IMG/VR virus record: IMGVR_UViG_3300028883_000032
Coordinates: 62,001 to 126,000 of that record
Strand: one strand, 5' to 3'
Length of the DNA: 64,000 nucleotides
The notes below the pieces were generated by a model. The model ran no database searches and was not told the DNA's origin. It saw nothing but the letters and a program-made list of their open reading frames with translations. A program made the position numbers and the translations under genes. Each line of letters starts with the position of its first letter. Position 1 is the stretch's first letter. This document shows positions 2,831 to 34,361 of this stretch, piece by piece.

Positions 2831-3127
2831 ATGAAATTAGTAATTGGAAAAATTATTGACTATTCCGCCAAATTTTCTGATGGCAGCAGCATTAGCGGGC
2901 AGGTTATAGTACCCACTAATGATTCCTATCCAACGTATTACGAGAGAGTACTTGAGATTTTGAGAACCGGTAAATGCGGAGCAAAAATGGATGACATAAA
3001 CACATTACAAGTGGGTTACAGGAAATATACTGAATTTGCTATACACCCAAGTGTGTTTGATACACTGCCTTCTGCTTTACCAAAGACTAGAAAACATAAA
3101 GAATGTTCGGCTGATGGCCATGTTTAG
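2831..3127 (+). CDS. hypothetical protein
   Basis: GGAGAG SD, ORF in operon. Confidence 0.6.
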   Translation: MKLVIGKIIDYSAKFSDGSSISGQVIVPTNDSYPTYYERVLEILRTGKCGAKMDDINTLQVGYRKYTEFAIHPSVFDTLPSALPKTRKHKECSADGHV

Positions 3128-3797: not shown

Positions 3798-4204
3798 TGA
3801 AAGTATTTTTGGGCGGTACCTGCGCCGGTAGTAAGTGGCGAGAAGAATTGATTCCTAAGCTAAAGTTGGACTACTTCAATCCAGTTGTTGATGATTGGGA
3901 TGAAATGGCATATATGCAAGAATTGTATGAGCGCGAACATTGTGATTTCGTGCTATACACAATAACTCCAGAAATGCAAGGGGTCTATTCTATCGCGGAA
4001 GTAGTTGACGATTCCAACAAAAGACCACATAAAACAATTCTTTGTATTTTGGGATCAAAGGAAGATTTTGACAATTCACACTTTAACTCATTGTATAAAG
4101 CTCTAACCAAAGTAGGTTTAATGGTTAGAAAAAATGGCGGTAAGTGCTTTGATTCTTTAACAAATGTGGCCCTATACTTAAATAGAATGAATAGGCAGCC
4201 ATAG
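3797..4204 (+). CDS. Nucleoside 2-deoxyribosyltransferase-like protein
   Basis: KVFLGGT..WRE..YFNPVVDDW..E.YEREHCD pattern. Confidence 0.75.
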   Translation: MKVFLGGTCAGSKWREELIPKLKLDYFNPVVDDWDEMAYMQELYEREHCDFVLYTITPEMQGVYSIAEVVDDSNKRPHKTILCILGSKEDFDNSHFNSLYKALTKVGLMVRKNGGKCFDSLTNVALYLNRMNRQP

Positions 4205-4218
4205 GGGTATAAGTAAGA

Positions 4219-4428
4219 ATGGTAAAATACAGGTTATGCCATCTGCAAAAAGGTCATGTGCATACAGTAAGTTACATCCCACAACCTTATGCAGTAGTTG
4301 GTAAAATATTATCTTTAAAGAAAGATCCCGGTTGGGAAGTGATGTCTGCAGGGAACCTTGTTAACCACGATGAAGTAATGGTCCAAAGAGATCTTTATCG
4401 GCATCACAGAGACATAACGGATGTTTAG
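4219..4428 (+). CDS. hypothetical protein
   Basis: 69 aa ORF filling the gap before tRNA-Cys. Confidence 0.6.
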   Translation: MVKYRLCHLQKGHVHTVSYIPQPYAVVGKILSLKKDPGWEVMSAGNLVNHDEVMVQRDLYRHHRDITDV

Positions 4429-4524: not shown

Positions 4525-4809
4525 ATGGAACTTTTACATTTATCTGATGGTAAAACACTTGTTGTAAAACAAGTATTAAAACATGGTCCTCCTGAAGGAT
4601 TTGAGTATAATTTAGACTACCTAACACGTTCCGGCTACGAAGTTATTAAAATGCCTAATGGAATTGAAGTGATTGGAGAAATGGTAATAGATGCAAAATT
4701 TAAGGAACTTGATAATAGGAGATATTCACGGACGTTACGACTTAATGATGGACGTACTAAAACGTTGCCACTACGACCCTACGAAGGACCGTCTGATATG
4801 TCTTGGTGA
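4525..4809 (+). CDS. hypothetical protein (3' end overlaps phosphatase)
   Basis: AGGA SD; 119 nt overlap with next gene. Confidence 0.5.
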   Translation: MELLHLSDGKTLVVKQVLKHGPPEGFEYNLDYLTRSGYEVIKMPNGIEVIGEMVIDAKFKELDNRRYSRTLRLNDGRTKTLPLRPYEGPSDMSW

Positions 4810-5452
4810 CTTTGTAGATGGCTCCGAGAGAGTGAAAGATTGTTTAGAGTATCTATCGGAACAACCGAACATAGAACCAATATTTGGTAATCATGATAAA
4901 TGGTTCTTGGATTGGGTTCAAACGGGAGAAGACCCTGACCCGTGGTGGTTATATAACGGAGGTCCTGTAACTCTCAAAAGCTATAATTACTATGCAGGTA
5001 ATGCAAGATCAGAACAAGCGAAATATGAGTGCGCAATGCTTAGGTATTGTCCAGACTCCCGAATACCTAGAAAACATGTTGAATTTATTCGAAATGCCCG
5101 TTTATACTATGAAACAGATAATTGGGTTGCTATGCATGGAGGGTTTAGGCCCGAAGTGGGGTTCAAGAAAGAGAATCCTGAAAACATAATGTGGGACCGT
5201 GATCTATTTTATCAGCATTGGCAAAAATTGCCAAAAGATCACAAATTAGTAATCGTAGGCCATACGCCCACGATGGCTGTTACTGGAATTCCAGAACCTA
5301 TATTTAGATATAAGACATTTGGCAAAGACAAAAAGCTTATGTTAATAAATATAGACACTGGTGGAAAAATTGGGAGTGCTTTGTGTGTACTTAATCCAGA
5401 CACACTAGAATGGTGGACTAGTAAAAAAGAGACAAATCCGAAAAACTGGTAA
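4691..5452 (+). CDS. Calcineurin-like metallophosphoesterase (Ser/Thr phosphatase family)
   Basis: GDIHG, GDFVDG, GNHD, HGG, GHTP, DTG motifs. Confidence 0.92.
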   Translation: MQNLRNLIIGDIHGRYDLMMDVLKRCHYDPTKDRLICLGDFVDGSERVKDCLEYLSEQPNIEPIFGNHDKWFLDWVQTGEDPDPWWLYNGGPVTLKSYNYYAGNARSEQAKYECAMLRYCPDSRIPRKHVEFIRNARLYYETDNWVAMHGGFRPEVGFKKENPENIMWDRDLFYQHWQKLPKDHKLVIVGHTPTMAVTGIPEPIFRYKTFGKDKKLMLINIDTGGKIGSALCVLNPDTLEWWTSKKETNPKNW

Positions 5453-5464
5453 CCATAATTAGTA

Positions 5465-6268
5465 ATGGTCAATCGCTATTATACAGACATTAATGCTTAT
5501 GATTTGCTTGATCCCAAGCATGAAAGGATACTAGCAACTCGTGCATTACTTGGTGACGACGCTGCAAGAGATGAACTAATAACATCAAATTTAAGATTTG
5601 TTGTATCTGTAGCTAAACAATATGTTAACCAAGGAATACCGCTGGAAGACCTAATTTCCGAAGGAAATTTGGGGCTTATAACTGCGGTAGAAAAATATGA
5701 CCCGACTAAGAATTATAAGTTTATTACTTATGCTTCTTACTGGATTAGACAAAGTATAATGAAAGCGATAGCGGAGCAGAACCGCACAATTCGTATTCCT
5801 ACGAATAAAGTGGCCCAGCTCTCAAAAGTTCGACAAGCCGAAGATCAGTTAGAGATGCAACTTGAACGTAAGCCAACTTTGGAAGAAGTTCAAGAGCACT
5901 TAGGAGATGATTTCGACGTAGCCTCTGTGGTTGAATACCAAGACAGGCCATTGGGCCTTAATGGATCAACTAATGAAGAACAAGATCTCATCGAAATGAT
6001 ACCAGACCCCAATTCTGAAAATCCGGATGAGTCCCTTCGTGAAACCATGTTTAATGAAGAACTTGGCGAAATAATGAGGGATTGTACAGAAAGAGAAAAA
6101 GATATACTCTATCTGTACTACGGTTTAGGCACGGGTGATAAAATGACATTGGAACAAATTGGATACCTACACGGCATTTGTCGCGAGCGTGTTCGACAGA
6201 TAAAGGCTAAAACAATTGATTTCATAAAGTCACACCCAAATTTAGATACACTAAAGGAGTTTCTATAA
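5465..6268 (+). CDS. RNA polymerase sigma70-family factor lacking region 1.1
   Basis: NLRFVVSVAKQY, DLISEGNLGL, FITYASYWIRQ, RTIRIP, TLEQIG..RERVRQI. Confidence 0.95.
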   Translation: MVNRYYTDINAYDLLDPKHERILATRALLGDDAARDELITSNLRFVVSVAKQYVNQGIPLEDLISEGNLGLITAVEKYDPTKNYKFITYASYWIRQSIMKAIAEQNRTIRIPTNKVAQLSKVRQAEDQLEMQLERKPTLEEVQEHLGDDFDVASVVEYQDRPLGLNGSTNEEQDLIEMIPDPNSENPDESLRETMFNEELGEIMRDCTEREKDILYLYYGLGTGDKMTLEQIGYLHGICRERVRQIKAKTIDFIKSHPNLDTLKEFL

Positions 6269-11493: not shown

Positions 11494-11520
11494 ATACCCC
11501 TCGTTGAGGGGTATTTTTTT
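11494..11520. terminator. Bidirectional intrinsic terminator between convergent modules
   Basis: ATACCCCTC-GTT-GAGGGGTAT flanked by A and T tracts. Confidence 0.85.
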
Positions 11521-12148
11521 AGCCTGAAATGACTCCCATACTACAAGCCAATAAACCTACATTCTCCACAAGAACAGTCCTATCAGATGCGAAGGATATG
11601 TTATGTTGATAAACATATGCATCTTCAAGATAAAAAGCTCCCATAAAGTTATATTCCCCATCAAACAGAGCAAACATTATGTCCGTTGGTTTGTTTAGGA
11701 ATTCCGAAGCCAAGTTAATGATGAATGTTTTATTCCCATCAAATGTAAATCCAAAATTCGGGTATTCGCCAAAATCTAGAGTTGTCTCGAGTTCATCGGG
11801 ACCTATAGGATAAAGAGAACCTATTAAGGAGTCCCCGTCAATTAACAACCTCCCCAAATTTGCATTTATTATTGTTCTTCCGGGAATTATATAAGACTGG
11901 TAAGAACCAAGTTCAAACAGTTGAATTAATTTCTTGTTCTGCTGTATTTGTGCTGTCTGGACGACACCAATGGCATTAAAGTCATTTATTGTAGGTGGAG
12001 TACCGATCCGTTCGCCATCTGCTGTGTGCTGTCTAGCACCGACAACTATTAACGTCGAATTTAATAAAGTTTTACCAGTTTTAATGTCAGGATTAACATG
12101 GCCACTAGAGCGGCCAACTAAGTCGCTCCAGTTGGCTACGGTAATCAT
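11519..12148 (-). CDS. Tail tube-like protein, paralog 2
   Basis: Paralog of 12167-12826 (AIGVVQ..QNK.L.QLFELGS..IPGRT..ANL.R..IDGDSL), downstream of sheath. Confidence 0.7.
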   Translation of the reverse strand: MITVANWSDLVGRSSGHVNPDIKTGKTLLNSTLIVVGARQHTADGERIGTPPTINDFNAIGVVQTAQIQQNKKLIQLFELGSYQSYIIPGRTIINANLGRLLIDGDSLIGSLYPIGPDELETTLDFGEYPNFGFTFDGNKTFIINLASEFLNKPTDIMFALFDGEYNFMGAFYLEDAYVYQHNISFASDRTVLVENVGLLACSMGVISG

Positions 12149-12166: not shown

Positions 12167-12826
12167 TTATACAGATTGTACCGATTGTATAGAATTTGCC
12201 CTTAACGAACAACTTTCTAACACAACTGTTTGTTGCGAAGCCACGGAGATTTGGTGACTTTGTAGATACGCATCTTTCAAGTAAAAACCGCCCATTAATT
12301 CGTGGTCCCCATCATTAAACCAAAATGCTAAATCGATGGGATTATCAAAGAACTCTGACGCCAAGTTTATAAGGAAAGAATGTCCTTGAGGTGTATCAAA
12401 TCCAGGGTCTGAAGTCATTTGACCTGCAGTTCCAGCCGAAAATCCATTTTCATCAGTTGGGTACATTATGGCCATTAAACTATCACCATCAATCATAATA
12501 CGTGATAGGTTAGCTTGAACAACAGTTCGTCCAGGAACAAAGTATGATGCTCTTGACCCTAATTCGAATAATTGTGCTAGCTGTTTATTCTGAACTACGG
12601 AGGCATTTTGAATAACTCCGATGGCCATGAAACTTCCTGGACCATCGGTATTATCCCCCGGTACAGCCACTGACCCCACCCCGTTCTCAACTGTTACATT
12701 AACTTTACGGGCCGCAATAACAATAGTTTGAGCGGATGTAAATTGTTTGCCATTGGTTATTAAATCATCAACATGGACATCATTTTTTCCAATAACACTA
12801 GTTGTCCAATCATTTACTGTACGCAT
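12167..12826 (-). CDS. Tail tube protein
   Basis: Directly after sheath; beta-rich tube pattern (QLFELGS, YLQSHQISV). Confidence 0.75.
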   Translation of the reverse strand: MRTVNDWTTSVIGKNDVHVDDLITNGKQFTSAQTIVIAARKVNVTVENGVGSVAVPGDNTDGPGSFMAIGVIQNASVVQNKQLAQLFELGSRASYFVPGRTVVQANLSRIMIDGDSLMAIMYPTDENGFSAGTAGQMTSDPGFDTPQGHSFLINLASEFFDNPIDLAFWFNDGDHELMGGFYLKDAYLQSHQISVASQQTVVLESCSLRANSIQSVQSV

Positions 12827-12843: not shown

Positions 12844-14427
12844 TTAGAAACCAACTGTAAAGCTGATTTTGTTAACAGGGAACTTTACCTCAACATCAAT
12901 ATTTGCGTATACGGTGTCATCTTCTGAGTAAAGTGTTACCAATGTAAATGAGTTGAGAACTCCTTCACGAACCAAATGCTTACCTACAGCAGTTATTGTT
13001 GTTGCCAATAGTTTCAAGAAGCTCGGACTAATAACGTTACGACCAATCAAACCGGATACAGAACTACGAAGGAATTTACCAGTATAATCCAGAGAAGCTC
13101 TAATTGAGTCCTCTTGACGCTTTGTGTCACTGCGATCTGTAGATAATTGGTGTCTTGTTACAATGGGAGCATTTTTAGTTACTTGGTACAGCCACCAAGT
13201 TCCCCCACCTGCCGCAGTATCTATCTGAGTTTCACTTAAGAAATCAGATGCATACTTAAGTCTTGCCGCACCGCTTAATGGTAAATTTGTGAGAGGCTGT
13301 TGTGGTGCAACTCCCGAACGGCGTCCAGCAGCCATTGCAGCGCCATAATAAGATGGTAATGGAATCAAAACATTGACAAAAAACTTATCACTGTCAATTA
13401 GTTGTTGGCGAACGGTTTCCGTAATTTCAGTATCTGCATATAAAATTGTACCGTCGCTAAGCGTAACACGTTCTTCCAATAAAGCGTTTAATGCCAACGA
13501 CCCATTAATATTATTTATATAGTTTGTTGTAAGTTGAGACACGTGCCATCTAACAGAAAAATATAAGGTGTCAGGGTATACCCAACGAGCACGTTCCTGT
13601 AAATTACTTATAGCCGCGGACTTTATATTTTGCATTGTCTTTGTTTTACCGCCTGAATCTACCAATGCTGCGGTTGTAGCGACATCGTCAGAATCTACCC
13701 ATGAGATGGTATTTCCGAAGAAAACTATACGCTCTTTCTTTGCCGCGGTTGCGCTCATGTTTACACAATGAGTTTGCCAAGTTCCACGTATAGTAGTATT
13801 AGTGGTGAGTGGTGCAAAGGCATAAGGTTCTGTTTGTAGTGCAAAAGCCTCCTGTGCCTCCTCGTGATCCGTGGCTGTTTGACCGTCAACACCATAGCCA
13901 TAGACTGCTTTACCAGCGTTATTTAGTGCCAGCCTTAATCCGAATGCTAGTGGGTTAAGAGGATCGATCTTACCACACCTGTTTGTCACATCATCCAAAC
14001 TTTCAAACAACACCACACTATTTACATTGGTGCGTAATTCACGCCAACCAATCAGTATTGATCCACCATCATAAGTACTTCCTAAAGAACCACTGATGGT
14101 TACATCGGTACCGTCTGGATTAACATAAAATTCTGTTGTATCCAAAGGTTTACGTGCGCCAAGAGTGCTAACAACGTCGACATAAACACTTTCTGTGTCC
14201 ACATTCGTACCATCACCAATAAGGCCCGAAAATGATACCGTAGTTCCAGTGGAATTATTGTAAGTATCTGGGTACGAATCCTTATATACAGAATCCGGAT
14301 TTTCTGTAATTTCGTGTACGTAGTAGCATTCACCAACAATCGCTGCTGGCAATAATGGAGTGTCAAGGTTAGGTGCCGCAGTCTTTTGAACGTAAGTTAC
14401 TTCGGAACCTGGTTTTGTGTAAGCCAT
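12844..14427 (-). CDS. Tail sheath protein
   Basis: MAY.KPG.EV N-terminus, HCVNMS...KERI, QPLTN, IVTRHQLSTD, VKFPVNKISFTV C-terminus. Confidence 0.88.
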   Translation of the reverse strand: MAYTKPGSEVTYVQKTAAPNLDTPLLPAAIVGECYYVHEITENPDSVYKDSYPDTYNNSTGTTVSFSGLIGDGTNVDTESVYVDVVSTLGARKPLDTTEFYVNPDGTDVTISGSLGSTYDGGSILIGWRELRTNVNSVVLFESLDDVTNRCGKIDPLNPLAFGLRLALNNAGKAVYGYGVDGQTATDHEEAQEAFALQTEPYAFAPLTTNTTIRGTWQTHCVNMSATAAKKERIVFFGNTISWVDSDDVATTAALVDSGGKTKTMQNIKSAAISNLQERARWVYPDTLYFSVRWHVSQLTTNYINNINGSLALNALLEERVTLSDGTILYADTEITETVRQQLIDSDKFFVNVLIPLPSYYGAAMAAGRRSGVAPQQPLTNLPLSGAARLKYASDFLSETQIDTAAGGGTWWLYQVTKNAPIVTRHQLSTDRSDTKRQEDSIRASLDYTGKFLRSSVSGLIGRNVISPSFLKLLATTITAVGKHLVREGVLNSFTLVTLYSEDDTVYANIDVEVKFPVNKISFTVGF

Positions 14428-16342: not shown

Positions 16343-16371
16343 AATATAAACTTATTTTCAAGGTTTGTCAA
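16343..16371 (-). promoter_or_regulatory. sigma70-like promoter TTGACA-N17-TATATT (copies also at 26282-26310, 29303-29330, 36507-36535, 48602-48631, 55680-55708)
   Basis: Six intergenic copies of CTTGACW with a 16-18 nt spacer and TATATT/TATACT, all upstream of - strand genes. Confidence 0.8.
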
Positions 16372-16391: not shown

Positions 16392-16760
16392 ATGGTTAAC
16401 TTACTCGGGAGACGTAACATGTTTGCAAAGCTTGAAAGAGCACTCGGCATCAGTATTCATACTGATGATCTGCTTGAAATGGTGAAGCTCATTGAAGATG
16501 TTATCAACGATTCGGGTTACAAAACCAATTACGTTTTGTGCCTTATCAAGATTGGACGATACGTTGATACGCCATACGCCAACATTCTGGCAGCTTTTCA
16601 ATCAGTGCTTGGTGCATCAGATGCAGAGTTGATGGCTTTCGGCGATCTGCAAGCTCAACTGACGAAGCACGTCAAGACTGTCGTCTTAGACGACGTCTAC
16701 CTATGCAAGTACTGCAATTATGGTCTTGAACACCCATTCCCGTTACATAATCAAAATTAA
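16392..16760 (+). CDS. hypothetical island protein (likely start 16419)
   Basis: GGGAG SD; followed by terminator ACGGGCTTAAGCCCGT-TTTT. Confidence 0.7.
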   Translation: MVNLLGRRNMFAKLERALGISIHTDDLLEMVKLIEDVINDSGYKTNYVLCLIKIGRYVDTPYANILAAFQSVLGASDAELMAFGDLQAQLTKHVKTVVLDDVYLCKYCNYGLEHPFPLHNQN

Positions 16761-16783
16761 GATTACGGGCTTAAGCCCGTTTT

Positions 16784-17486: not shown

Positions 17487-17946
17487 ACAGCAATGTCAAT
17501 AAAATATACAGCATGAAAGCAAATATAAAACCAATACTTACTGCCCCATTAAAGTCCCAATTCAACCAATCTGCAAAACTAAACCCATTTGAATACAGTA
17601 GTTCCTGTTTCCATGCAGGCTGCTTATTACCATATATATACCAAGGTTTCCAACCATCAAATACTTCCCACAGACCTCCTATTACCCAAGATGTCAAACA
17701 TGCTACTATTGGCATTAAAGCAGTTTGCCAATTAAATAAAAACCAGAATGCAGCGACTAAAACTAAAGCAATAAATAAACTGCCGAGTAGGTGCCATTTT
17801 CCATATTTTCCAATATTGGTCTCTTTAATAAAATTCCACTTAAACCCAAACCTGTTAGTACGCACAGCGTCTGGACCTTCGGGAAGACCATCTGTTGGAT
17901 ACCCAAAAAAATCTCTTGTTTTTTTAGTAAAATACAAATCCATCAT
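17485..17946 (-). CDS. Membrane protein
   Basis: Three hydrophobic segments. Confidence 0.65.
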   Translation of the reverse strand: MMDLYFTKKTRDFFGYPTDGLPEGPDAVRTNRFGFKWNFIKETNIGKYGKWHLLGSLFIALVLVAAFWFLFNWQTALMPIVACLTSWVIGGLWEVFDGWKPWYIYGNKQPAWKQELLYSNGFSFADWLNWDFNGAVSIGFIFAFMLYILLTLL

Positions 17947-18632
17947 CGCCCTATTTGCCTCAGAATGTGATGTATAGTTTCCGGTAGCTCTCCAAATTCA
18001 TGTTCTACCGCTTTATATGCAACATTTTTATCACTGTATCGTGGCATGCCTAGTCCCCACCTATATGCCTCTTTACGTTCAGAATCTAGTTTTCTATACA
18101 AATTAGCCACATCTTGTGCCTCTTCAAGAGTAGGACGTTTTTCAGCTTGTTCTACTTGTCTCCCCATTTCCCTAGTTAATAAATCTAAATATGGTTTATT
18201 TAACTCGTTAATACGCTCCTCAAATCCGACTGGGCGGTCGTCTGGCTTTTTTATCCATTTGTCATTGATGACATCATATCCCGCCATTAAAGCTTCTGTA
18301 TTTGCTCTGTCAATTTCCGGTAAAACAAAATAATTCACTGGATGCTTAGTCGTACCAAGCATATTTTTACCAGAGCGATTAAATGCCTTAGCTATTGCAC
18401 TATAATAGTCTACAGCATTTTTGTCACTAAGCTCAACCTGTACATCAATATCGCTCGTATCACTATAATAGTATCCCAAAATGGAGCCTATAACGGTGAT
18501 GCCTCTAATAAACTTTGGCGGTATTACACCGTATAAATCTTCTATTAACTCTACCCTTACGGATGGCCTTAATTTGTCATTAATAAAAACAGCGGGCGAA
18601 AGTACACTTTTCTTTTTATCAAAAATACTCAT
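17943..18632 (-). CDS. Pol-beta-superfamily nucleotidyltransferase
   Basis: IGSILGYYYSDTSDIDVQV (GS..DxD), HPVNYFV. Confidence 0.8.
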   Translation of the reverse strand: MSIFDKKKSVLSPAVFINDKLRPSVRVELIEDLYGVIPPKFIRGITVIGSILGYYYSDTSDIDVQVELSDKNAVDYYSAIAKAFNRSGKNMLGTTKHPVNYFVLPEIDRANTEALMAGYDVINDKWIKKPDDRPVGFEERINELNKPYLDLLTREMGRQVEQAEKRPTLEEAQDVANLYRKLDSERKEAYRWGLGMPRYSDKNVAYKAVEHEFGELPETIHHILRQIGR

Positions 18633-19981
18633 TAGCGTAGGGCTTCCAATACTTGGTTTATTTCATCTTGTTTACGTCTGCTCATGGACATTAAATACTG
18701 TCCAGAACTTACAGGGGCGTGCCCACTAAAAAACGATTTTGGTAAAGTAGAAACGTATGTTTTTACTTTTACTGTTTTTGACGGATCGTCTCCGCGACGT
18801 ATGCCGCGGGCGGCGGCTTGATCAAGGCGACTTTTATTCCAATGAGGTTCTACCAACTGAACCAAACTAGTCTTTGGTAAGTTCAGGCCTTCAGAACCGG
18901 CACCGCTATATAAGAATGCTTTAACCTTACCTGAGTTGTATTGCTTAATTTGATCTAACCTGTTTGGGCCGGACATTTCCCCTGTAAGTACAGAATGCTT
19001 TATACCCAAAGCCTTCAATCTTCTTGATAGCGGCTCTATTCCGGCTCCAATGTAGTTCGAATAAGCCAATACTTTGCCGCCTCTTGCTAATTCCTCTGTC
19101 ATGTCTTTAACAACTTTATCCAGTTTAGTTGATTCCGCTTTAGCGGGATTTTTTACGTATGGAGCTGTTGTATTACTTACCTGTCGTAACCCAGACATGA
19201 AAGCATTTAGACTAGGTCTCTCCTGCTTTGAAGGTGGTAAATTCTTCTCAATTTTATAACGCACACTACGAGGAATCTGTTTGTTTAAGTATTTGTATAG
19301 TTTTGCTTGTCTTGGACCCATCTCAACACTAACTATTTCGCGGGAACTGTGCGGTATCAAGCCTTTAAATTGCTGTGTTTTTGCCACGTGAACATACGGT
19401 TTAACAACGTTTTTTAAATATGCTCTATTTTTAAGTTGTTTAACATCCCCGGGTTTTACTCCAGTAATTCTTGCAAAAAACGGAACGCTCACCTTTTTGT
19501 CTTCAAAAAACATTTTGTTAAAGCGTTCTTTGTCCATAGGAACTAAAGGCTTATTGGCGGCCAAGTTAACTTGGGTCGCCAAATCTGAAGCTTCGTTGTA
19601 CATGGGCGTTGCGGACAGTAGCAATGCCTTACGGTATTTTTGTCTTTGTTTTAATATATTTGAAAATGCTTTTGTTTCGGGGTTACGTATATATTGAGAC
19701 TCATCTATAACTAGTGCATCTCCACCAGGCAACTTATTTCCTCTAGAGATGGCTGCAAAGGTTGATGTGGTACGAGAGGATTTAGTCCCAAAAGCTTTTT
19801 GCTCTTCTTGCTCAAAATTTTTCTTTAGCGAAGCCGTGCCAACAACGCTAGTCTTCCTACCTCTAGTAGCATTTAACGCTAAGCGGGTTTTACCAGAACC
19901 GGTTGGATGTACCACTAATAGGCCGGTCGGGGACTGGCGGTATTTCTTTAGTGCCTGTTCTTGTGGTGGTAACATTACCAC
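18632..19981 (-). CDS. SF2 (SNF2-like) helicase
   Basis: HPTGSGKT, VIDESQ, LSATP, GSEGLNL, QAAARGIRRG. Confidence 0.9.
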   Translation of the reverse strand: MVMLPPQEQALKKYRQSPTGLLVVHPTGSGKTRLALNATRGRKTSVVGTASLKKNFEQEEQKAFGTKSSRTTSTFAAISRGNKLPGGDALVIDESQYIRNPETKAFSNILKQRQKYRKALLLSATPMYNEASDLATQVNLAANKPLVPMDKERFNKMFFEDKKVSVPFFARITGVKPGDVKQLKNRAYLKNVVKPYVHVAKTQQFKGLIPHSSREIVSVEMGPRQAKLYKYLNKQIPRSVRYKIEKNLPPSKQERPSLNAFMSGLRQVSNTTAPYVKNPAKAESTKLDKVVKDMTEELARGGKVLAYSNYIGAGIEPLSRRLKALGIKHSVLTGEMSGPNRLDQIKQYNSGKVKAFLYSGAGSEGLNLPKTSLVQLVEPHWNKSRLDQAAARGIRRGDDPSKTVKVKTYVSTLPKSFFSGHAPVSSGQYLMSMSRRKQDEINQVLEALR

Positions 19982-21357
19982 ATCTCCCTGAAGCCCAAAA
20001 AGACTGGCATTCTAAATTTTTCGGTAGCAGGATAAAAGTCCTGATAAGACACTTTTATTAACTTACCTATGTACTGACCCGGATTATTAAAAAAGTCTCG
20101 TCTGAGGTCATCTGTGAGCCCTGAGCCTATACGTATGTTAGCGGGACCATCTTTTTTTAGACTAGCAATTATTCCGCCAACGGCTACTCCGTCATATTTA
20201 GAATTTTTGGCAGCAGGATAAAAGCCCCTTATATAAACTTCAGTGTCCTTGGCCATCTTCATCTTTGATGGTACTGGTGAATCTAAATCAAATTCAACAA
20301 TTCCTTCTGAAGTAAGGGGGTATCGTCCAGACTTAACATCTGATAACAACATTTGTTTGTCGCTCCAAGTTTGTGCCATTGGGGCTAGCTTAAGACCTGG
20401 AGTCAAATCTACTACTTCTTTTAAAAGGGGGAACTTGTCTCTATACGGCAAGTTTGCGACATTACGACCACGATAGGTATCAATGTCATAAATGATGTGA
20501 TCCAATCCGCCTTTTTCAGCTTGCAATTCGCGGGATTTCATTGTACTGGCATTAAGCATGCCTGACGTCTCATTGGACGCTAGCACCTTTCCAGTATTGT
20601 CTTTTGCAAACAATTCTCCACGCAATACCGTCTCATTACCAACTTCAGGCGGAGCAATATTACGATATAGCGATGTTTTAAACGTGTGGTCTATTAATGC
20701 GTTGTTGTCTTTGCGACTTACCCTATATGAATAAGTCTCTATGGGCTTATCTTTACGAAGTACAAACAAAGCGTGCGCACCATCAATTTTTGGAGACCAT
20801 ATTTTTGAGTCATCCATATAGTCCAATTTTGATAGTTCCTTCTCTTTGTACTTCGGCTTATAGGCAGGAACAGAGCGAGATAAGCGAGTAGGCGTGTGAT
20901 TGACCAACAACCAATTTTTCCCATCAAAAGCTTTGATCAGTGTATAACGCCCAGGAGTAGTGCTTTTATGTACAACAAACGACAACTTACCTGGCTCTGC
21001 CTTAACAACCTCTACCTTATCTCTAGCCTCCAAACTAACATTACCCTTACCATACCCACTCTCTATTTTACCTTCAAAATTCATGTAGTCAAGTGTGTGA
21101 GTAGGCTGATGGATAGCTAGAACTTTTTCCCCAGGTTTTGGTAGGTGTTGTATAACCCACGAATGAGCATGGCCTGTTTCCGGATCACCCAGCCGTAGAT
21201 CTTTATGTGGACCGGCAACTTCCGCCTCATGACTATGAACCGCAAATTCCCAAATAACAGGATCCTTTACTTTGGGAATATTTTGGAACTTATTTCTATC
21301 GGGAATGCCGGGAATTGTCTCACCATTTTTGATTAACAACAGTTCACGTAAATTCAT
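19975..21357 (-). CDS. LigD-type 3'-phosphoesterase fused to ATP-dependent DNA ligase
   Basis: PE motifs VHSH, PHKDLRL, HTLDY.NFEG; ligase PKIDG, RGELF, YDI, EGIV, OB fold IGSGL. Confidence 0.88.
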   Translation of the reverse strand: MNLRELLLIKNGETIPGIPDRNKFQNIPKVKDPVIWEFAVHSHEAEVAGPHKDLRLGDPETGHAHSWVIQHLPKPGEKVLAIHQPTHTLDYMNFEGKIESGYGKGNVSLEARDKVEVVKAEPGKLSFVVHKSTTPGRYTLIKAFDGKNWLLVNHTPTRLSRSVPAYKPKYKEKELSKLDYMDDSKIWSPKIDGAHALFVLRKDKPIETYSYRVSRKDNNALIDHTFKTSLYRNIAPPEVGNETVLRGELFAKDNTGKVLASNETSGMLNASTMKSRELQAEKGGLDHIIYDIDTYRGRNVANLPYRDKFPLLKEVVDLTPGLKLAPMAQTWSDKQMLLSDVKSGRYPLTSEGIVEFDLDSPVPSKMKMAKDTEVYIRGFYPAAKNSKYDGVAVGGIIASLKKDGPANIRIGSGLTDDLRRDFFNNPGQYIGKLIKVSYQDFYPATEKFRMPVFLGFREMW

Positions 21358-21359
21358 TA

Positions 21360-22160
21360 TTATCTCACGTACTCCACTAAATCGGGGACACTGAGACGGT
21401 ACCTTATGTCACCTTTGGGAATTATCTCCATACGAGAATTATTAATTACTGTCACTAATCCTTTTTGGGTAGGTCTTACTTCAAGTATTTCGTATCTTTT
21501 GTTATCATAACTAACAACCACATCCCCCGGTTCTACGTCTGGCCATGGTGGAGAGGTTAGAATTGCATCCGTAATTTGCCACTCTCCCCATTGCAACTGA
21601 GCTTGTCTCTTTGGAGTTGGGTTAATCATGCAAGTTCTTATTATGGGAGTATAATAGCCCCCCTGATAGCCCGTATCGTAACAAGTACTGCAATTGGCAG
21701 TCTGATGCCGTCCTATGGTTACATCATAATCTGGACATCTTGTTCCACTAGTTTTTTTCTTAAAAATAGCACAAGGTCTACCAGTTAGTCTAAAAGCAAT
21801 ATCTTCGGTTCTAATAATAGCGTCACTATAAATATCTCCATAAGATGCCTGCTTTACAGGATTGCAGATATCTCCAGTATTAGACCCGTCGGTAAATGAC
21901 AGGGCGTAATAAAGTTCCTGCCACTGGTCGTACTCATAACCAGAGATAGTGGTATCTGTCCACCCATAATCATCAGCTGAGATTACTCCAGAAGACACTA
22001 AATCAAACTCATCTATAATTCCAGAATGGGCCGCCCAAAATCCCCTGTAGATGTTTACAGTGTAAACACTGGAATCCTCATCAGTATTTTCCAGTGTCCA
22101 ATGTAAATTCATCACTCCTGGTTCATAGGATCTTATCAGTAACTCATCTAGTGCTATCAT
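21360..22160 (-). CDS. Putative neck/head-closure protein
   Basis: KKKTSGTRCP..CSTCYDTGYQGGYY, PDVEPGDVVV; position in head-tail block. Confidence 0.6.
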   Translation of the reverse strand: MIALDELLIRSYEPGVMNLHWTLENTDEDSSVYTVNIYRGFWAAHSGIIDEFDLVSSGVISADDYGWTDTTISGYEYDQWQELYYALSFTDGSNTGDICNPVKQASYGDIYSDAIIRTEDIAFRLTGRPCAIFKKKTSGTRCPDYDVTIGRHQTANCSTCYDTGYQGGYYTPIIRTCMINPTPKRQAQLQWGEWQITDAILTSPPWPDVEPGDVVVSYDNKRYEILEVRPTQKGLVTVINNSRMEIIPKGDIRYRLSVPDLVEYVR

Positions 22161-22163
22161 TTT

Positions 22164-22622
22164 TTACCAAGATGCATCATAATATTCGGAACTTACACTA
22201 CCGTAACAATCGCTAATGTTCTGTTTTTTCTTCAAACCAGTTACTCTGTCTACCCACGATTTTTCAATAAGATTAAACCAGTTTAGGTAGTTTTTCCATT
22301 TATCATAAGCCTGTATTTGTACTCCTCCTGTGTCATTGTAGCTGACTGCATTACGGGCACTCCAAATGCCATGGCCTATTAATACTTGTTTTAAGGTCCC
22401 GTATTTTAAAGCAGAATATGATGGGAAGTCGTCGATTGTCCACGATGTTTCTATGTGTGGAAGAACAGCGTTATTTGCTTCGTCAACCGCATCTAGCATT
22501 GATTGGTAAATATAGGAATCCGAGCTTTCTTGAATTTTTTCAAGAAAATTTCTATCTACTGTATCCTCTACCCAAGTTCTTATGTTATCTATATAAGACT
22601 GTTCTGTTGTTGAATATGCCAT
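22164..22622 (-). CDS. Putative head-tail adaptor
   Basis: Helical protein with SYNDTGGVQI motif upstream of neck gene. Confidence 0.55.
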   Translation of the reverse strand: MAYSTTEQSYIDNIRTWVEDTVDRNFLEKIQESSDSYIYQSMLDAVDEANNAVLPHIETSWTIDDFPSYSALKYGTLKQVLIGHGIWSARNAVSYNDTGGVQIQAYDKWKNYLNWFNLIEKSWVDRVTGLKKKQNISDCYGSVSSEYYDASW

Positions 22623-26248: not shown

Positions 26249-26317
26249 ATTTCCCCCAATTTTTATGGATTATCATATCTTAATATACTTAAAAAACTCT
26301 TTAAAGTCAAGTAAAAA

Positions 26318-26342
26318 AGCCTCCCAAAATATTTAGGAGGCT
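26318..26342 (-). terminator. Terminator after major capsid gene
   Basis: AGCCTCCTAAATATTTTGGGAGGCT-TTTTT on - strand. Confidence 0.8.
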
Positions 26343-26365: not shown

Positions 26366-27343
26366 TTAGTTAGTCCAGTATACCTTTGCCATTGAATAGG
26401 CGTTACCAATACCCATGCCGATAATCTCATAAAGACTCCAGCTGATAAGGTTACGTTTCTTTTCAATCCAGAACTTAACATCACCCAATATATAGGCGTG
26501 ACCCATATATTGTTTTGGTGTAAAGCCGTACATTGTGCCAGGAGGTACAAGTTCGCCTTTATTGGTAACAATAAGATCTTTACCAAAGATTGTGGTGTAG
26601 GTCCAGCCGTTTACTGTGGTGTTTTCTGCGATTGCGTTACCGCGATCATCAGCACGCCACAAAAGGATCTTGTTGTAATCTTCACGATTCATGAGGATTA
26701 CGGAGCAATCATAACGTCTAGCATCAAAATCATGCTCGTAAATTGTTGATCCAGCTGAATTCTTTAAACTCGTACTACCAACGGTACTTGAATTCTCAAG
26801 CAAGTTGAATAGACGTACAAACAACATCGGATCAAGCTCATTATTATTTGTATTGTAGGCTGTAGAATTTTCGTACTTACCTGACAATGCAACGGCATCT
26901 TCGACGCGACTAATGAATCCTTGGTCTTCAATTGCATGAAGATCTTTTAGAGAGTTATTTTCGATGATCTCTGTTAGAGGCATCTCATAAGCTAAAAGCT
27001 CTTCTTCTACTTTCTGGTATTCTCTTGAGCTGATTCCGTAAAATGCAATTTCATAACGTTCACCCATGATGTACTCAGAATCTGGTGCACCACGGAAGTT
27101 AATTTCCATCGCTACTGAATTGGGCTCGAGATCCACGACCTTAACCAGCTGGTCGTGATTTACAGAGCGTTGACATTCTGCCTTTGTAATAGGCTGAGGC
27201 ATCATAATTTTGCGTGAGAAAGAAACTTCACGCATGCGCTGACGAATGTATGAGCTTGTGCTCATCGCAAGCTTGGCGCGATCCTCTGGAGAATCCAACG
27301 ACTCAACAAACAGTTCATTAAGAATTTCAGGACTTGTTGCCAT
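26366..27343 (-). CDS. Major capsid protein (HK97-like fold inferred)
   Basis: Follows protease, scaffolds and decoration gene, ends at a strong terminator; C-terminal P-domain pattern GKDLIVT..GTMYGF..YEIIGMGIGN. Confidence 0.75.
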   Translation of the reverse strand: MATSPEILNELFVESLDSPEDRAKLAMSTSSYIRQRMREVSFSRKIMMPQPITKAECQRSVNHDQLVKVVDLEPNSVAMEINFRGAPDSEYIMGERYEIAFYGISSREYQKVEEELLAYEMPLTEIIENNSLKDLHAIEDQGFISRVEDAVALSGKYENSTAYNTNNNELDPMLFVRLFNLLENSSTVGSTSLKNSAGSTIYEHDFDARRYDCSVILMNREDYNKILLWRADDRGNAIAENTTVNGWTYTTIFGKDLIVTNKGELVPPGTMYGFTPKQYMGHAYILGDVKFWIEKKRNLISWSLYEIIGMGIGNAYSMAKVYWTN

Positions 27344-29251: not shown

Positions 29252-29348
29252 GCTCTTGCCTCCTAATAAGTTTTCTAATTATCGGTTTTCACCTACTAAA
29301 TAAGTATAATACTATTTTTGTATTTGTCAAGTCTTTTTTTAAACTTTT

Positions 29349-30152
29349 TTACTTACCAAGAATTCTTTCTAAAGCACTAACCATCTGTGCCCTACGAGAC
29401 AGTTCCTGCGGAGAAGTAGATACGTCCACTATACTAGCGGGTATGTTTTTTTCCATACTTCCTATTTTTTTAAGCATGTATGCCGTTTTATCAGCAGGAA
29501 TACGAACAAAACTAATGTCAAAGAATTTTGGTTTGGTATTAATTGCTCTGGCTCTTCTACCGTCAGGGAGTATTGAATTAATACTGCTTCGTTTAAGATG
29601 TTTACAGTAGTCTTTTGTAGTTTTGGCTTTATTGTTACAAATAGAACAAATATCGTAAGGTACTTTGCACCCCATACTAAATGGGGGATATTCGTTATTT
29701 AATATTTTAACTAAAAGATCTTCTGGTAGTTTTTTCCCATCTATATCCAATACCAACTCCACACGATGCATGTGTGGGTTATAGTATGAAAATATTGGTT
29801 TTCCATAATATGGGTCGTCTGGTTTATTTTTATGGTGCCTAAATACCTTGGCACTTGTTTCAAATGTTTTATGATACGCTTGTAAAGCTGATTCTGGAAA
29901 CCCATCCCCATTGCGATTAGAACCATAATATTCATCAGCGCCTAGGGCGTTAACAATAATATAAATATGGTCTTCGGCCTCTTTAAGTTGCGATAAAAAC
30001 TCCTCTAAAGGAGTCATAACCCCAGCAGTTTTCACAAACTGGCTCGGATGAAATCTTCTAATATTTACTCCGCCGTTCTCATCATGAAAAGGAATAGAGA
30101 AATATTTTTCCATGCCATCTGGAGTGTCTACTATATGTGTGAATTCGCCCAT
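29349..30152 (-). CDS. Prohead maturation protease (HK97/assemblin-like) with Zn-finger
   Basis: NRNGDGF, KVFRHH (His), FSMGC (Ser), CSIC..CKH; upstream of scaffolds and MCP. Confidence 0.75.
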   Translation of the reverse strand: MGEFTHIVDTPDGMEKYFSIPFHDENGGVNIRRFHPSQFVKTAGVMTPLEEFLSQLKEAEDHIYIIVNALGADEYYGSNRNGDGFPESALQAYHKTFETSAKVFRHHKNKPDDPYYGKPIFSYYNPHMHRVELVLDIDGKKLPEDLLVKILNNEYPPFSMGCKVPYDICSICNNKAKTTKDYCKHLKRSSINSILPDGRRARAINTKPKFFDISFVRIPADKTAYMLKKIGSMEKNIPASIVDVSTSPQELSRRAQMVSALERILGK

Positions 30153-31789: not shown

Positions 31790-33403
31790 TTATGAAATAT
31801 AACTTACTGGGGTTTCACACATTTCGCAAATAGCTGTAGCAAAAATAAGTGAATGTACTGTGTCATCTGGATCAGAATTAGTATATTGTAGTTTATTATG
31901 ATCTTCATCATAGTCTGCTACAATAGCCATTAAATCATCAGCAAATGGTGTTTTAAACTGATCGTAGTGTGGAAAAACATATTGTTTAGTTTTTACTCTA
32001 TGATAAAAATTAGAAATCGCCTTGTTACGATTTACCATCCAATGCATGGCCTTACCTTGCCACTTATAATCCTCTTTTAAAGTGGCAGAATGTAGATATT
32101 CTGTTACTGCGTAACGGCCAAGACGCCTGCGTAATTCTGCGTTGGAGGCTTCCCCCATGCCACGATCTGCCCCTATTCGTTCAACTTCCCACGCTTTGGC
32201 TATTTTTGGTATTTCGTCATGAATGTATTCAAAATTGGCGTATTTGCCTTCAAACCTACGTATATATTTAACAACAAACCTGTCGTATTCATCTCGTTGT
32301 ATGACACTAACCACGGTATAGCTGTTATCGCTGTTGGCGGGACCCCAGTCGATTCCCATGTAACTTGGTCTGGGTTTGTGTTTTAAAGTTATGGCTCCAG
32401 GTTGTCGGTAGTCTGGCATAATATACCCAGGATCACAAGCTGCCTTAATTTGTTCAGGGGTGATAAGAACAACACCATCATCGTACTCAAGACCAAGTAT
32501 TTCGTTATAAAAGGTTGCTCTTGACTCTGTTTCGTATTTATAAACAATGTCTTGCTCCCAATCAATCCATGGTGCCCCATAGAATTGCAGCTGAGATATC
32601 CTAAACCCTTCAACAAGATTTGCTCGAGATCGAGCAGACTGATTAGTGCTTATCCATGACCCAATTCGTGGATTAAGAATCTTCCCACAATACTTACATA
32701 TTAACGCGTGAAGTCCTATATTCTTTTCTGTTAGAATATTATGTTTTCCACAGTGTCCACACTCCACAGCCCACTCATTCATGGTGGAAGAAAACCACCA
32801 TTTCGCCAAGGTACCACGTTTTCTTTTAGGCGTGCCTGTATAATAATTCCATTTATACAAAGAACGGTGCATAGCTTGATTAATAATTTCTATGCTGTCT
32901 TGCAGAAGATCCTGAGCCTCATCGTAACAAATCATATCAGCAGAAAGGCCACGAAGTCTGTCAGGACTTTGTAACGCATAGCGCAAGTATATTTTTGCGC
33001 CATTTACAAGAGTTTTGTTAAATACGTTATTTTGTAAATTTCTATTCCACCAATACTTCTTTATAAGGGGAGACTCTTCAAGTATAGGCGTAAAGCGATC
33101 GTACGAAAATATTTTTGTTTGGTCGACTGACGGAGAAACATACACTGTACGAAATCCCATCGGTCTGGCATCTTTGCCGCCTCGTTCCCTTGGCAACAAG
33201 GCGCTATTAGCAAATATAATATTTGCTAGAGTTGTGCTTTTTACAACCTGTCGTGCTGTTTTTAATACTATGACATTCGCTGGGTCTATATTATATATAG
33301 GCCGCATATGTGGATAGGCATCCAAACTATACGGCATTCCATTCAAATAAACATACGATTCAACAAATTCACTTTTTGTAAAATTAAGCGGTGCGTTCTT
33401 CAT
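31790..33403 (-). CDS. Terminase large subunit (GpA-like ATPase plus RNase H-like nuclease)
   Basis: KTARQVVKST (Walker A variant), RGLSADMICYDEAQD (Walker B), YMGIDWG, IGADRGMG, PDDTVHSL. Confidence 0.9.
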   Translation of the reverse strand: MKNAPLNFTKSEFVESYVYLNGMPYSLDAYPHMRPIYNIDPANVIVLKTARQVVKSTTLANIIFANSALLPRERGGKDARPMGFRTVYVSPSVDQTKIFSYDRFTPILEESPLIKKYWWNRNLQNNVFNKTLVNGAKIYLRYALQSPDRLRGLSADMICYDEAQDLLQDSIEIINQAMHRSLYKWNYYTGTPKRKRGTLAKWWFSSTMNEWAVECGHCGKHNILTEKNIGLHALICKYCGKILNPRIGSWISTNQSARSRANLVEGFRISQLQFYGAPWIDWEQDIVYKYETESRATFYNEILGLEYDDGVVLITPEQIKAACDPGYIMPDYRQPGAITLKHKPRPSYMGIDWGPANSDNSYTVVSVIQRDEYDRFVVKYIRRFEGKYANFEYIHDEIPKIAKAWEVERIGADRGMGEASNAELRRRLGRYAVTEYLHSATLKEDYKWQGKAMHWMVNRNKAISNFYHRVKTKQYVFPHYDQFKTPFADDLMAIVADYDEDHNKLQYTNSDPDDTVHSLIFATAICEMCETPVSYIS

Positions 33404-34361
33404 CGCTCTTATCTTTTTTCTTAGCCTTAATAACAGCCTCTATTTCATCTAAGCCCATTCCAGAAACATCCTCCATAGTCCCACCACCCATTTCATTTGG
33501 GTCCGGGAGTTCAACTCCCAGCTCTTCCGCGCTTTTTATTGTTATCGAAGGATTAATGGTCTTAAGATTTATTTTTAGATCCGCATAAAGGTCTGTAGAA
33601 TCAGAATCGCTGTTTTCCATATCACGAATACGGTCATATGCTTTTAGCATAAGATCGCCCCACTTCTTCGATTGGTCAGGGTTGTATCTAGAATTTTCAT
33701 CAAAGTTGTAGAAAGACGTACGAAACAGTGATTCCAGCATAGACCCAAATGATCTGTCTGGAGTAAGGCCTAAATTATAGACAACAAAATCCTTGTCTTT
33801 TTTTAAGGCCATGGTATAAAGACGTTTCAAATCTTTGTTTTCTTCATGCTGTCTATAAATTTCTAACTCTTCATAACTCCAACTGAACACATTAAAAAAG
33901 TATTTAAAAAACAACATGAATATTTCGGTATCCCAAGCAGTGCCTTGTCGTCCATTTGCATAAAGCTCTATGTCGGCTTCATCAATACCAGCCATTGCCA
34001 TGGTTTGTAATTCTCTGCGAAGCCTTGGGTCATTCAGAGCTTTAAATACATCTCTATACACGTCTATCGGAAAATCATCTACCGTGAATAAGTTAGTATC
34101 AAATAGATATGCAAACATGTCCTTTACTTGTAATTCGTTAAGGATGTCAACATCTATTCTAAAATTATTTGGATCTTGGTTAAAATGCTCTGGATACAAA
34201 CGTGACAGTTGGCCACGTATTTGAGAGTAGGCATCACCTTGTATCAACGGTAAGGAGTATTCTTTTAGTCTGTCATTAACAGTCTTTTGTGACAGAAGAC
34301 GAAGAACAAGGACCTCACAAAACCGCCTATGCGGGATTAGGTAAATTGGGTTTACTGCCAT
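33384..34361 (-). CDS. hypothetical protein, possible terminase small subunit
   Basis: Overlaps TerL start; helical with acidic tail; positional inference only. Confidence 0.35.
   Translation of the reverse strand: MAVNPIYLIPHRRFCEVLVLRLLSQKTVNDRLKEYSLPLIQGDAYSQIRGQLSRLYPEHFNQDPNNFRIDVDILNELQVKDMFAYLFDTNLFTVDDFPIDVYRDVFKALNDPRLRRELQTMAMAGIDEADIELYANGRQGTAWDTEIFMLFFKYFFNVFSWSYEELEIYRQHEENKDLKRLYTMALKKDKDFVVYNLGLTPDRSFGSMLESLFRTSFYNFDENSRYNPDQSKKWGDLMLKAYDRIRDMENSDSDSTDLYADLKINLKTINPSITIKSAEELGVELPDPNEMGGGTMEDVSGMGLDEIEAVIKAKKKDKSDEERTA

Follow-up and report, generated by a model that had tools for sequence, protein, structure and literature searches.

Why would a phage keep a ligase, fused to an end-healing domain of the LigD type, among the genes for its head and tail? 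The question is raised by a window of 64,000 nucleotides (the whole stretch of DNA analyzed here, to which positions refer unless genome positions are stated), which consists of bases 62001-126000 of one 206,856-bp viral contig, IMG/VR record IMGVR_UViG_3300028883_000032. CheckV puts the completeness of this genome at 100%; its record is linear, and end repeats were not detected. A first-pass annotation of the window had described three contiguous enzyme genes inside the head-tail operon, i.e., a nucleotidyltransferase (NTase), a helicase and a phosphoesterase (PE)-ligase, and the three genes are present as minus-strand open reading frames (ORFs) at 17943-18632, 18632-19981 and 19975-21357, respectively. 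They are tightly coupled, with start/stop overlaps of 7, 1 and 4 bp and a gap of 2 bp between the PE-ligase gene and the ORF upstream of it. As discussed below, we consider it probable that the trio represents one late-expressed module that would heal and seal nucleic-acid ends, a prediction made from protein sequences, structural models and gene order.

The PE-ligase (P0003; 19975-21357, minus strand) has 460 residues, matches to the Pfam families LigD_N, DNA_ligase_A_M and DNA_ligase_OB_2, matches in the PDB and more than 200 homologues. The PE domain covers approximately residues 36-152 (20902-21252, minus strand) and was aligned to the archaeal enzymes CkoPE (3p4h) and MbaPE (3p43). The match to PF13298 (LigD_N) extends over residues 41-142 with an E value of 8.6e-10 and 39.2 bits against a cut-off of 31.1, and the same match has 42.5 bits in a six-frame search of the genome. 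Residues H43, H51, D53, R55, H87 and Y91 align with His9, His15, Asp17, Arg19, His51 and Tyr55 of CkoPE, and the His/His/Asp/Arg/His/Tyr pattern ascribed earlier to this domain is thus kept at all six positions. In CkoPE, these residues are manganese ligands (two His and one Asp) and a phosphate site (Arg, His and Tyr); alanine mutants of the five residues other than Tyr abolish activity, while the Tyr mutant retains about 20% (PMC3082917).

The remainder of the protein is a DNA ligase with its nucleotidyltransferase motifs present. The adenylyltransferase domain at approximately residues 170-362 (20272-20850, minus strand) has K190, D192 and G193 of the KxDG motif, R212, E248, D291 and E351-G352, and the OB domain at approximately residues 363-460 (19978-20271, minus strand; PF14743) has K365, K367 and the motif VI arginine R449 and matches the OB domain of the Chlorella virus ligase. 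The Pfam scores of this particular protein are low, i.e., 17.8 bits for DNA_ligase_A_M (below the cut-off) and 27.8 bits for DNA_ligase_OB_2 (at the cut-off), and its homologues score higher. In searches of solved structures, the PE part matches 3P4H, 3P43 and the PE of Pseudomonas LigD, and the C-terminal part matches the Chlorella virus DNA ligase. The PDB matches of the family profile to the ligase half are led by 9fzx (a 420-residue DNA ligase) and the Chlorella virus ligase, after which come small ATP ligases of bacteria and archaea. DNA ligases are the sole matches of this half in the PDB; there is no RNA ligase or capping enzyme among them and no LigD ligase structure either, the LigD chains 3n9b and 2lj6 being matched through the PE domain only. 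A capping-enzyme identity for the ligase half was rejected as the leading reading, as the family profile matches DNA ligases only. Pfam shows PE and ligase domains and no polymerase domain in the protein, which agrees with the earlier description of a PE-ATP ligase fusion that lacks the LigD polymerase domain.

Among 58 unique full-length homologues, the five PE residues H, H, D, R and H are present in 58 of 58 and the Y in 57, and the ligase residues K190 and K367 are present in all 58. This invariance indicates that the active sites of both the PE and the ligase are under selection. The safest statement about the trio as a whole is that it would be one module for the healing and sealing of nucleic-acid ends, that it appears to be catalytically competent by every sequence criterion and that it is predicted to be expressed along with the virion genes. 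A predicted complex of the PE-ligase with the NTase scored 0.00 in two runs made without controls, which is evidence neither way.

The second gene of the trio (18632-19981, minus strand) encodes a 449-residue SNF2-family ATPase (P0002) with Pfam SNF2-rel_dom (46.7 bits) and Helicase_C (50.7 bits), both above their cut-offs, and with the Walker A motif, the DExx box and motif VI intact in the translation. Its best solved relative is the Sulfolobus Rad54-like protein 1z63 (6.4e-12). SNF2 enzymes are translocases on double-stranded DNA and not strand-separating helicases. Because they translocate on duplex DNA, the role of unwinding that had been assigned to this protein is not the activity to be expected from it.

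The third gene (17943-18632, minus strand) encodes a 229-residue protein (P0001) that has no Pfam match above threshold, the best being the poly(A)-polymerase palm domain (E 0.019) and Polbeta (0.08). An alignment with ten homologues shows invariant G49 and S50 (the GS motif) and D61 and D63 (DxD), together with H97, R186, N203 and K207. The AlphaFold model (pLDDT 83) combines an alpha/beta domain at the N terminus with a helical domain at the C terminus. Nearly all of the Foldseek matches to this model are aminoglycoside nucleotidyltransferases (ANT), MNT antitoxins, CD-NTases and CCA-type enzymes, with weak E values from 4e-3. In an exhaustive structural search, Z reached 7.5 for MNT-type minimal NTases, which gave the best of the alignments over the N-terminal part (approximately residues 12-125); further high-ranking alignments pair the helical C-terminal domain with helical proteins that are unrelated. 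The assignment of P0001 to the Pol-beta nucleotidyltransferase fold, with a C-terminal helical domain, is well supported by the model and the conserved motifs. A profile search of 1.8 billion cluster representatives gave 4820 members of the P0001 family at E <= 1e-3; for two long members, E values of about 3e-4 were obtained with NTP_transf_2 and Polbeta, near the cut-off for NTP_transf_2. A DUF4269 segment in a relative (L052; loci of relatives are cited by L numbers) was tried as another member of the family and was rejected, since the family hidden Markov model (HMM) gave no match.

The NTase family displays some patterns of its own elsewhere. For example, P0001-type genes directly precede a phage bS21 gene and a gpA-type terminase gene in unrelated lineages (L088:695-1754 and L089:133-2144); a bS21 gene was not found in the genome that contains the window. 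Another locus (L090:5001-10623) has the order NTase, LigT/2H, SNF2 and, further along, terminase; a TROVE/Ro60 gene is close by. A PE-ligase (P0016) and a member of the NTase family (P0262, Zn ribbon-DUF5661-NTase) each contain a fused DUF5661, which may be a docking or targeting domain common to the two families. The NTase homologue at L088:695-1486 matches its database protein only when TGA is read as Trp. PE-ligase genes of six relatives (L012, L030, L031, L036, L048 and L060) have in-frame stops, all of them TGA. These observations suggest that there are TGA-recoded phages within the group.

The order of the minus-strand genes is PhoH, a 325-residue ORF, large terminase TerL (31790-33403), head protease (29349-30152), major head protein (26366-27343) and a 607-residue lectin-fold protein, followed by ORF 22164-22622, ORF 21360-22160, the trio, five small or unassigned ORFs, tail sheath (12844-14427) and two tube-like paralogues. 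ORF 22164-22622, two genes upstream of the trio, encodes a predicted head-to-tail adaptor (neck) protein of 152 residues. Its AlphaFold model is helical, and 17 of the 18 top matches in VIA, an exhaustive structural search, are phage neck or adaptor chains (Z 5.5-7.6), including the P22 gp4 class, T4 gp13/14, Mu, phage 812 and crAss001. Each of these Z values is middling; the enrichment for neck and adaptor chains is clear. Foldseek found nothing significant with this model. In the relatives also, the adaptor gene comes after the major head gene. As adaptor and neck chains dominate the structural matches, the claim that the trio lies downstream of neck genes is supported for this ORF. ORF 21360-22160 (minus strand), directly upstream of the PE-ligase gene, encodes a conserved protein found only in viruses that is syntenic with the adaptor in relatives; it has no Pfam or PHROG family above noise, and its Atlas neighbors are viral hypothetical proteins only.

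Predicted transcription signals are in keeping with this arrangement. The three top-ranking sigma70-like sites of the minus strand (29303-29330, 26282-26310 and 16343-16371) have the form TTGACa, 16-17 nt, TATAyT, and each of them sits in an intergenic gap ahead of a gene block. The site at 26282-26310 (TTGACT, a 17 nt spacer and TATATT, a consensus match) would be the head of the operon that contains the trio. A terminator-like hairpin at 26318-26342 follows the head gene, and another at 16765-16780 (minus strand) is at the end of the operon, its T-run being on the plus strand and its minus-strand tail not T-rich. Between 26282 and 16780, the minus strand has no further intergenic promoter-like or terminator-like site. 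Since the promoter and the hairpin flank the stretch 26282-16765, the trio is predicted to lie inside one 9.5-kb unit that begins at the promoter behind the head gene and ends at 16765. The placement of the enzyme genes inside the structural operon, as originally proposed, is borne out to this extent: they share a predicted unit with neck and tail genes, and the sigma70-like promoter ahead of this unit is of the type found for the other structural operons.

Genome-wide, about 22 non-structural genes on the plus strand are preceded by another motif, tGGAATAAGA, which is absent from the unit that contains the trio. It occurs in 11 of 96 upstream regions, where 0.8 would be expected, and within the window it is found at 16380 on the plus strand, just before ORF 16392-16760; judged by this distribution, it is probably a phage-specific promoter class. 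The phage also encodes a sigma70-family factor of its own (5465-6268, beside PolA), which fits with a late use of the sigma70-like promoters.

How widespread is this module? Among deposited phages, no close relative was found. Megablast of the region gave no match, the PE domain alone gave no tblastn match at E 0.01 in 50,697 deposited phage records, and tblastn with the complete PE-ligase reached four distant phage ligases through its ligase half only. IMG/VR gave no match when scanned with the single PE-ligase protein, and species-representative prokaryote genomes gave no close relative with the single peptide pattern used, which is weak evidence of absence. A word-based protein search found 212 PE-ligase homologues with 35-50% identity, many of them on contigs of 100-200 kb, and an alignment-based scan of IMG/VR found 80 loci that represent 63 distinct lineages at 90% identity (64 with the window).

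In some of these relatives, proteins that are separate in the window are joined in one chain. For example, a single ORF of 1329 residues in L032 is a fusion of PE-ligase, pyrophosphatase (InPase) and SNF2, a single ORF of 1560 residues in L064 has the order SNF2-NUDIX-PE-ligase and a single ORF of 783 residues in L016 (P0030) is a PE-ligase-NTase fusion. Fusions of this Rosetta-stone kind strongly indicate that the genes that are separate in the window function together. Fusions of the PE-ligase to pyrophosphatase are many, with one or two InPase domains, and further partners include 2H-SAK (L027 and L063), His_Phos_1 (L067), an AAA_33 kinase together with an RNA_ligase-like signal (P0095), GNAT and DUF5661. 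The pyrophosphatase and NUDIX fusions would fit with a need to pull steps that release pyrophosphate, such as ligase adenylylation and nucleotidyl transfer, forward. Two additional fusions are a PE-ligase joined to DUF4269 and a C39-type cysteine peptidase (L052:9923-12742) and one joined to a glycine-zipper segment (L033).

The gene neighborhoods of the relatives point in the same direction as the fusions. Within 10 kb of the PE-ligase, the 64 lineages have an SNF2 gene in 16 cases, an NTase gene in 15, a giant RNA polymerase (RNAP) gene in 15 and recognizable head, tail or terminase genes in 25. The last figure is a lower bound because structural neighbors were recognized only by their similarity to the window proteins, and none of these lineage counts are phylogenetically independent. 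The recurring neighbors (TerL, the homologue of the 325-residue ORF, sheath, tube and RNAP) are on the same strand as the PE-ligase gene in proportions that range from 19 of 21 copies to all of them. Five relatives (L007, L010, L013, L016 and L017) have the trio in the slot between adaptor and sheath in another order, with 37-48% identity; L001 and L010 likewise have a different gene order at 37-48% identity, with the trio adjoining the sheath gene. In L006, L008, L018, L021, L024, L034 and others, the PE-ligase gene is a few genes before the run 325-residue ORF, NTase, terminase. The corresponding slot in L084 has a PE alone without a ligase. A synteny survey of related phages had been proposed as a check on the first-pass annotation; in all 63 lineages surveyed, the PE-ligase gene shares its orientation with packaging, head, tail or giant RNAP genes wherever such genes are recognizable.

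The association with the giant RNAP had been overlooked in the first-pass annotation, and so had the RNA-type end-healing fusions (2H and P-loop kinase) of the relatives. The RNAP neighbors, which contain Rpb1 domains 1-5 and Rpb2 domain 7, occur at 18 loci in 15 lineages and are always co-oriented with the PE-ligase. The gene order is RNAP, SNF2, PE-ligase in L039 and L057, and the PE-ligase gene is between the large and small RNAP genes in L049, L051, L054 and L079. The genome that contains the window also has such a polymerase, a single-chain enzyme of the cellular beta/beta' type with 2046 fused residues, encoded at genome positions 153628-159768 (minus strand), which is outside the window and 70 kb from the trio. 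Relatives carry the RNAP as subunits of approximately 1480 and 600 residues. The nearest cultured relatives of the polymerase are from Vibrio phages D69, D148 and D181 and Salmonella phage Arash.

Phage Arash deserves attention for another reason. Among cultured phages, the closest relative of the SNF2 protein is Arash Gp217, a reciprocal best match with 36% identity over 95% of its length, and Arash also gives the best cultured TerL match. The gp217 gene is directly after the gene for RNAP beta' (Gp216) and before a run of structural genes. In the virion proteome of Arash, Gp217 is represented by 38 unique peptides and 1148 spectra, as compared with 1210 spectra for RNAP beta' and 1333 for the major capsid protein (PMC10585845). 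In addition, a comparative study predicts that SNF2 proteins of jumbo phages that are linked to RNAP genes act like RapA (PMC7824862).

How might such a module work? We suggest that the PE domain would be a manganese-dependent 3'-phosphoesterase that converts 3'-phosphate or 3'-ribonucleotide ends to 3'-OH, and that the minimal ATP-dependent ligase of the Chlorella virus/LigE type to which it is fused would then seal the resulting nick. The SNF2 ATPase might move the enzymes along duplex DNA or clear bound proteins from it, and the NTase might modify or extend the 3' end. The likeliest substrate would be the phage's own DNA at nicks or ends with blocked 3' termini. We favor phage DNA because the ligase matches DNA ligases only, because the SNF2 protein, which is a partner and in some relatives a fusion partner, is a duplex-DNA motor and because separate DNA and RNA ligases are encoded elsewhere in the genome. 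The likeliest time would be the start of infection, with the enzymes present in the virion beside the phage RNAP. The Arash data and the RNAP linkage lean toward such an action after injection, whereas the position next to TerL and the need for ligase in T4 head filling lean toward an action before packaging. Packaging of the module in the virion is conceivable, and we would put it somewhat short of an even chance. A broader version, in which a large uncultured group of RNAP-encoding myophages of 130-210 kb would preload their virions with PE-ligase, SNF2 and NTase, often together with pyrophosphatase, inject these with the genome and the polymerase, and so repair nicked or 3'-blocked nucleic acid before phage gene expression begins, we regard as unlikely in its entirety. 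If true, it would be a pre-packaged repair type of counter-defense without a described phage precedent, contained in some lineages in one polypeptide of more than 1300 residues.

Several observations weigh against the explanation that we favor. The Arash virion list comprises 116 proteins, including ribonucleotide reductase and metabolic enzymes, and is not stringent (PMC10585845); the abundance of Gp217 is striking in spite of this. Homologues of the PE-ligase and of the P0001-type NTase are absent in Arash and in PA-SR01, both of which have the SNF2 protein, and because Arash lacks the other two, the virion evidence covers SNF2 alone and in a distant relative. In the alignment of P0001, no conserved acidic residue that could be the third catalytic carboxylate was found on the third strand, where H97 and N100 are conserved instead. 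The promoters and terminators on which the predicted unit depends are consensus matches, and the total promoter count equals that of shuffled sequence. Finally, the fusions to 2H, histidine phosphatase, P-loop kinase and NUDIX domains point to RNA ends as much as to DNA ends, as does the NTase-2H-SNF2 neighborhood with TROVE/Ro60.

The window opens with the 3' part of a separate ATP-dependent DNA ligase gene (2-805, plus strand), whose existence had been pointed out earlier and is real, this being the end of a 382-residue gene that runs out of the window. It belongs to a replication block that also contains a PF09414 RNA ligase (3036-3797, plus strand), a calcineurin-like phosphoesterase (4691-5452, plus strand), the sigma factor and PolA; the RNA ligase and the calcineurin-like phosphoesterase may be a separate RNA repair pair. 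With a DNA ligase and an RNA ligase in this block, the PE-ligase is not the only ligase of the genome. The second, stand-alone PE that had been described at 45250-45663 (P0123, minus strand, 137 residues) is a true PE homologue (BLASTP 2e-9, family HMM 1.9e-18), but it is degenerate: Met replaces the phosphate-binding Arg, Asp replaces the Tyr and the protein does not match the Pfam PE model. Short PE paralogues near the terminase gene in two relatives also lack the Tyr.

The first-pass annotation had viewed the trio as a kit for non-homologous end joining (NHEJ), in which a LigD-like reaction would rejoin or circularize the injected genome after double-strand cuts by restriction or CRISPR systems. 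A LigD-type PE fused to a ligase, an NTase that could replace the LigD polymerase and a linear genome record in which end repeats were not detected would all be in accord with this. However, Ku (PF02735) has no match at E <= 1 across the whole 206,856-bp genome, which is rated 100% complete. The LigD polymerase domain (PF21686) has one sub-threshold match genome-wide, of 16.3 bits, in a 946-residue ORF about 115 kb from the trio that is probably a replicative primase, and the ligase module, with its OB_2 domain and its likeness to Chlorella virus and LigE enzymes, is not that of LigD. The slot in L084 that holds a PE without a ligase does not fit an NHEJ kit either. In addition, cuts by restriction enzymes and by Cas9 or Cas12 leave 3'-OH and 5'-phosphate ends, for which a PE is not required, so that the proposed defense against such cuts has no need of a 3'-phosphatase. 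Taken together, we consider an NHEJ-like mechanism to be quite improbable.

Three other explanations deserve consideration. One is that the module is late and unpackaged and prepares DNA for the terminase, cleaning and sealing nicks and remodeling branched or protein-bound concatemers so that heads can be filled. The structural-operon position, the run from PE-ligase to the 325-residue ORF, NTase and TerL in many relatives and the NTase family adjoining TerL in independent lineages would be expected from this explanation, and there is a precedent in T4, where defects in ligase, endonuclease VII and topoisomerase impair head filling and packaging is poorer with nicked substrates (PMC10893049). 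It is nevertheless unlikely in our judgment, as a separate ligase already exists in the replication block, the abundance of the SNF2 homologue in Arash virions is not needed by it and the linkage to RNAP genes is left unexplained. Slightly less likely, though a real rival, is that the module repairs RNA, namely tRNAs or mRNAs that are cut or 3'-blocked by defense RNases or tRNA-modifying toxins triggered by late proteins; the PE would take off 3' phosphates, while restoration of 3' ends would fall to the NTase and sealing to the ligase. Pointing that way are the fusions to 2H-SAK, His_Phos_1, the AAA_33 kinase with its RNA_ligase-like signal and NUDIX, the TROVE/Ro60 locus, the NTase genes beside phage bS21, the 27 tRNAs of the phage and the weak resemblance of the NTase model to TUTase and CCA-type enzymes. 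On the other hand, the ligase profile matches DNA ligases with no RNA ligase or capping enzyme among them, the genome has its own PF09414 RNA ligase, SNF2 enzymes act on duplex DNA and are fused to the PE-ligase in relatives, and the characterized PE enzymes use DNA primer-templates (PMC3082917). The last explanation, which we regard as improbable, is that the three proteins serve the giant RNAP in the manner of the NPH-I, poly(A) polymerase and capping enzyme of poxvirus cores and might release stalled polymerase, tail transcripts and process RNA or template ends. The RNAP gene within 10 kb in 15 of 64 lineages, often adjacent or with the PE-ligase between the subunit genes, the similar virion abundance of Gp217 and the RNAP beta' whose gene it follows, the RapA-like prediction for jumbo-phage SNF2 proteins (PMC7824862) and the weak NTase match to the poly(A)-polymerase palm domain speak for such a role. 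Against it, the RNAP gene is 70 kb from the trio in the genome studied here, the ligase has no similarity to capping enzymes, no role of PE chemistry in transcription is known and the RNAP-linked lineages may be few clades.

Some other features of this genome may be mentioned. The 325-residue ORF (33384-34361, minus strand) overlaps the start of TerL and is conserved in 16 related loci, in which the NTase gene and TerL come after it in this order. No family match was obtained for this ORF, which may be a candidate for the small terminase. Relatives have a single tube-like gene that is matched by both of the neighboring paralogues after the sheath gene (11519-12148 and 12167-12826, minus strand), a hint that the tail tube gene has been duplicated. 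Aragorn found 27 tRNA genes, one of which has a CUA anticodon (amber-suppressor type), and a tmRNA-like gene with the tag GETPVLKAA; genome positions 4202-4275 and 150804-151167 pertain to these tRNA and tmRNA observations.

What, then, is new about the heal-and-seal module that we favor? To our knowledge, work on LigD-type phosphoesterases has been confined to bacterial NHEJ and to orphan enzymes of archaea. Here, the PE domain is found with its active site intact in more than 200 phage proteins, where it is fused to a ligase of a different kind from that in LigD and is always encoded among late or virion genes where these can be recognized. A full-text literature search found no description of a phage PE-ligase, and the DNA-ligase review that it turned up does not mention one. 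The parts are of known kinds; their combination, i.e., a PE with a minimal viral-type ligase that is associated with an SNF2 ATPase and with a new family of NTases, in structural and RNAP operons of phages and often in giant fusions, is not in the literature searched. The fusions predict that four activities would act jointly, namely 3'-end healing, sealing, ATP-driven DNA translocation and nucleotidyl transfer. A large uncharacterized NTase family of about 4800 clusters that adjoins terminase genes is brought to light as well. If the enzymes are packaged, nucleic-acid repair would join the short list of functions that phages inject with their DNA, and the PE-ligase could become a single-chain reagent for joining "dirty" DNA ends.

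It is instructive to compare the module with the systems that it resembles. With bacterial LigD and Ku it shares the PE superfamily, the six catalytic residues, the fusion of PE to an ATP ligase and the logic of healing before sealing. However, the phage lacks Ku and the primase-polymerase, its ligase has the short OB_2 domain and is like those of Chlorella virus and LigE, and its gene is in a structural operon with an SNF2 ATPase and a Pol-beta-fold NTase. The archaeal PEs are the best sequence matches of the PE domain with the family profile (CkoPE, 3P4H, 2.5e-21; MbaPE, 3P43, 5.7e-19), and they have the same beta-barrel residues and no Ku partner; the phage PE differs in being fused to a ligase and encoded in a late operon, whereas clustering with repair genes is not seen for the archaeal PEs (PMC3082917). 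Among solved structures, the ligase half is closest to the Chlorella virus DNA ligase and the LigE-type ligases, which likewise consist of a nucleotidyltransferase and an OB domain with motifs I-VI but have no end-healing domain.

A healing phosphoesterase coupled to a ligase is also present in T4 Pnkp with Rnl1/Rnl2 and in bacterial Pnkp-Hen1, and the PE-ligase family adds kinase, 2H and phosphatase domains to this theme. In contrast to those systems, the phage module has a PE barrel rather than a HAD or calcineurin domain, its ligase is DNA-ligase-like, it is mostly without a kinase and it is in a structural rather than an early operon. Arash Gp217 and the other RNAP-linked SNF2 proteins resemble the SNF2 member of the trio in that Gp217 is its reciprocal best match, has structural and RNAP genes as neighbors and occurs abundantly in virions, but Arash has neither the PE-ligase nor the P0001-type NTase. 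The NTase shares a Pol-beta fold core and the GS and DxD motifs with the MNT antitoxins and the aminoglycoside ANT enzymes, and its layout of an NTase domain followed by a helical domain is ANT-like; it differs from them in having no HEPN partner or Pfam family and in having the invariant residues H97, R186, N203 and K207 of its own.

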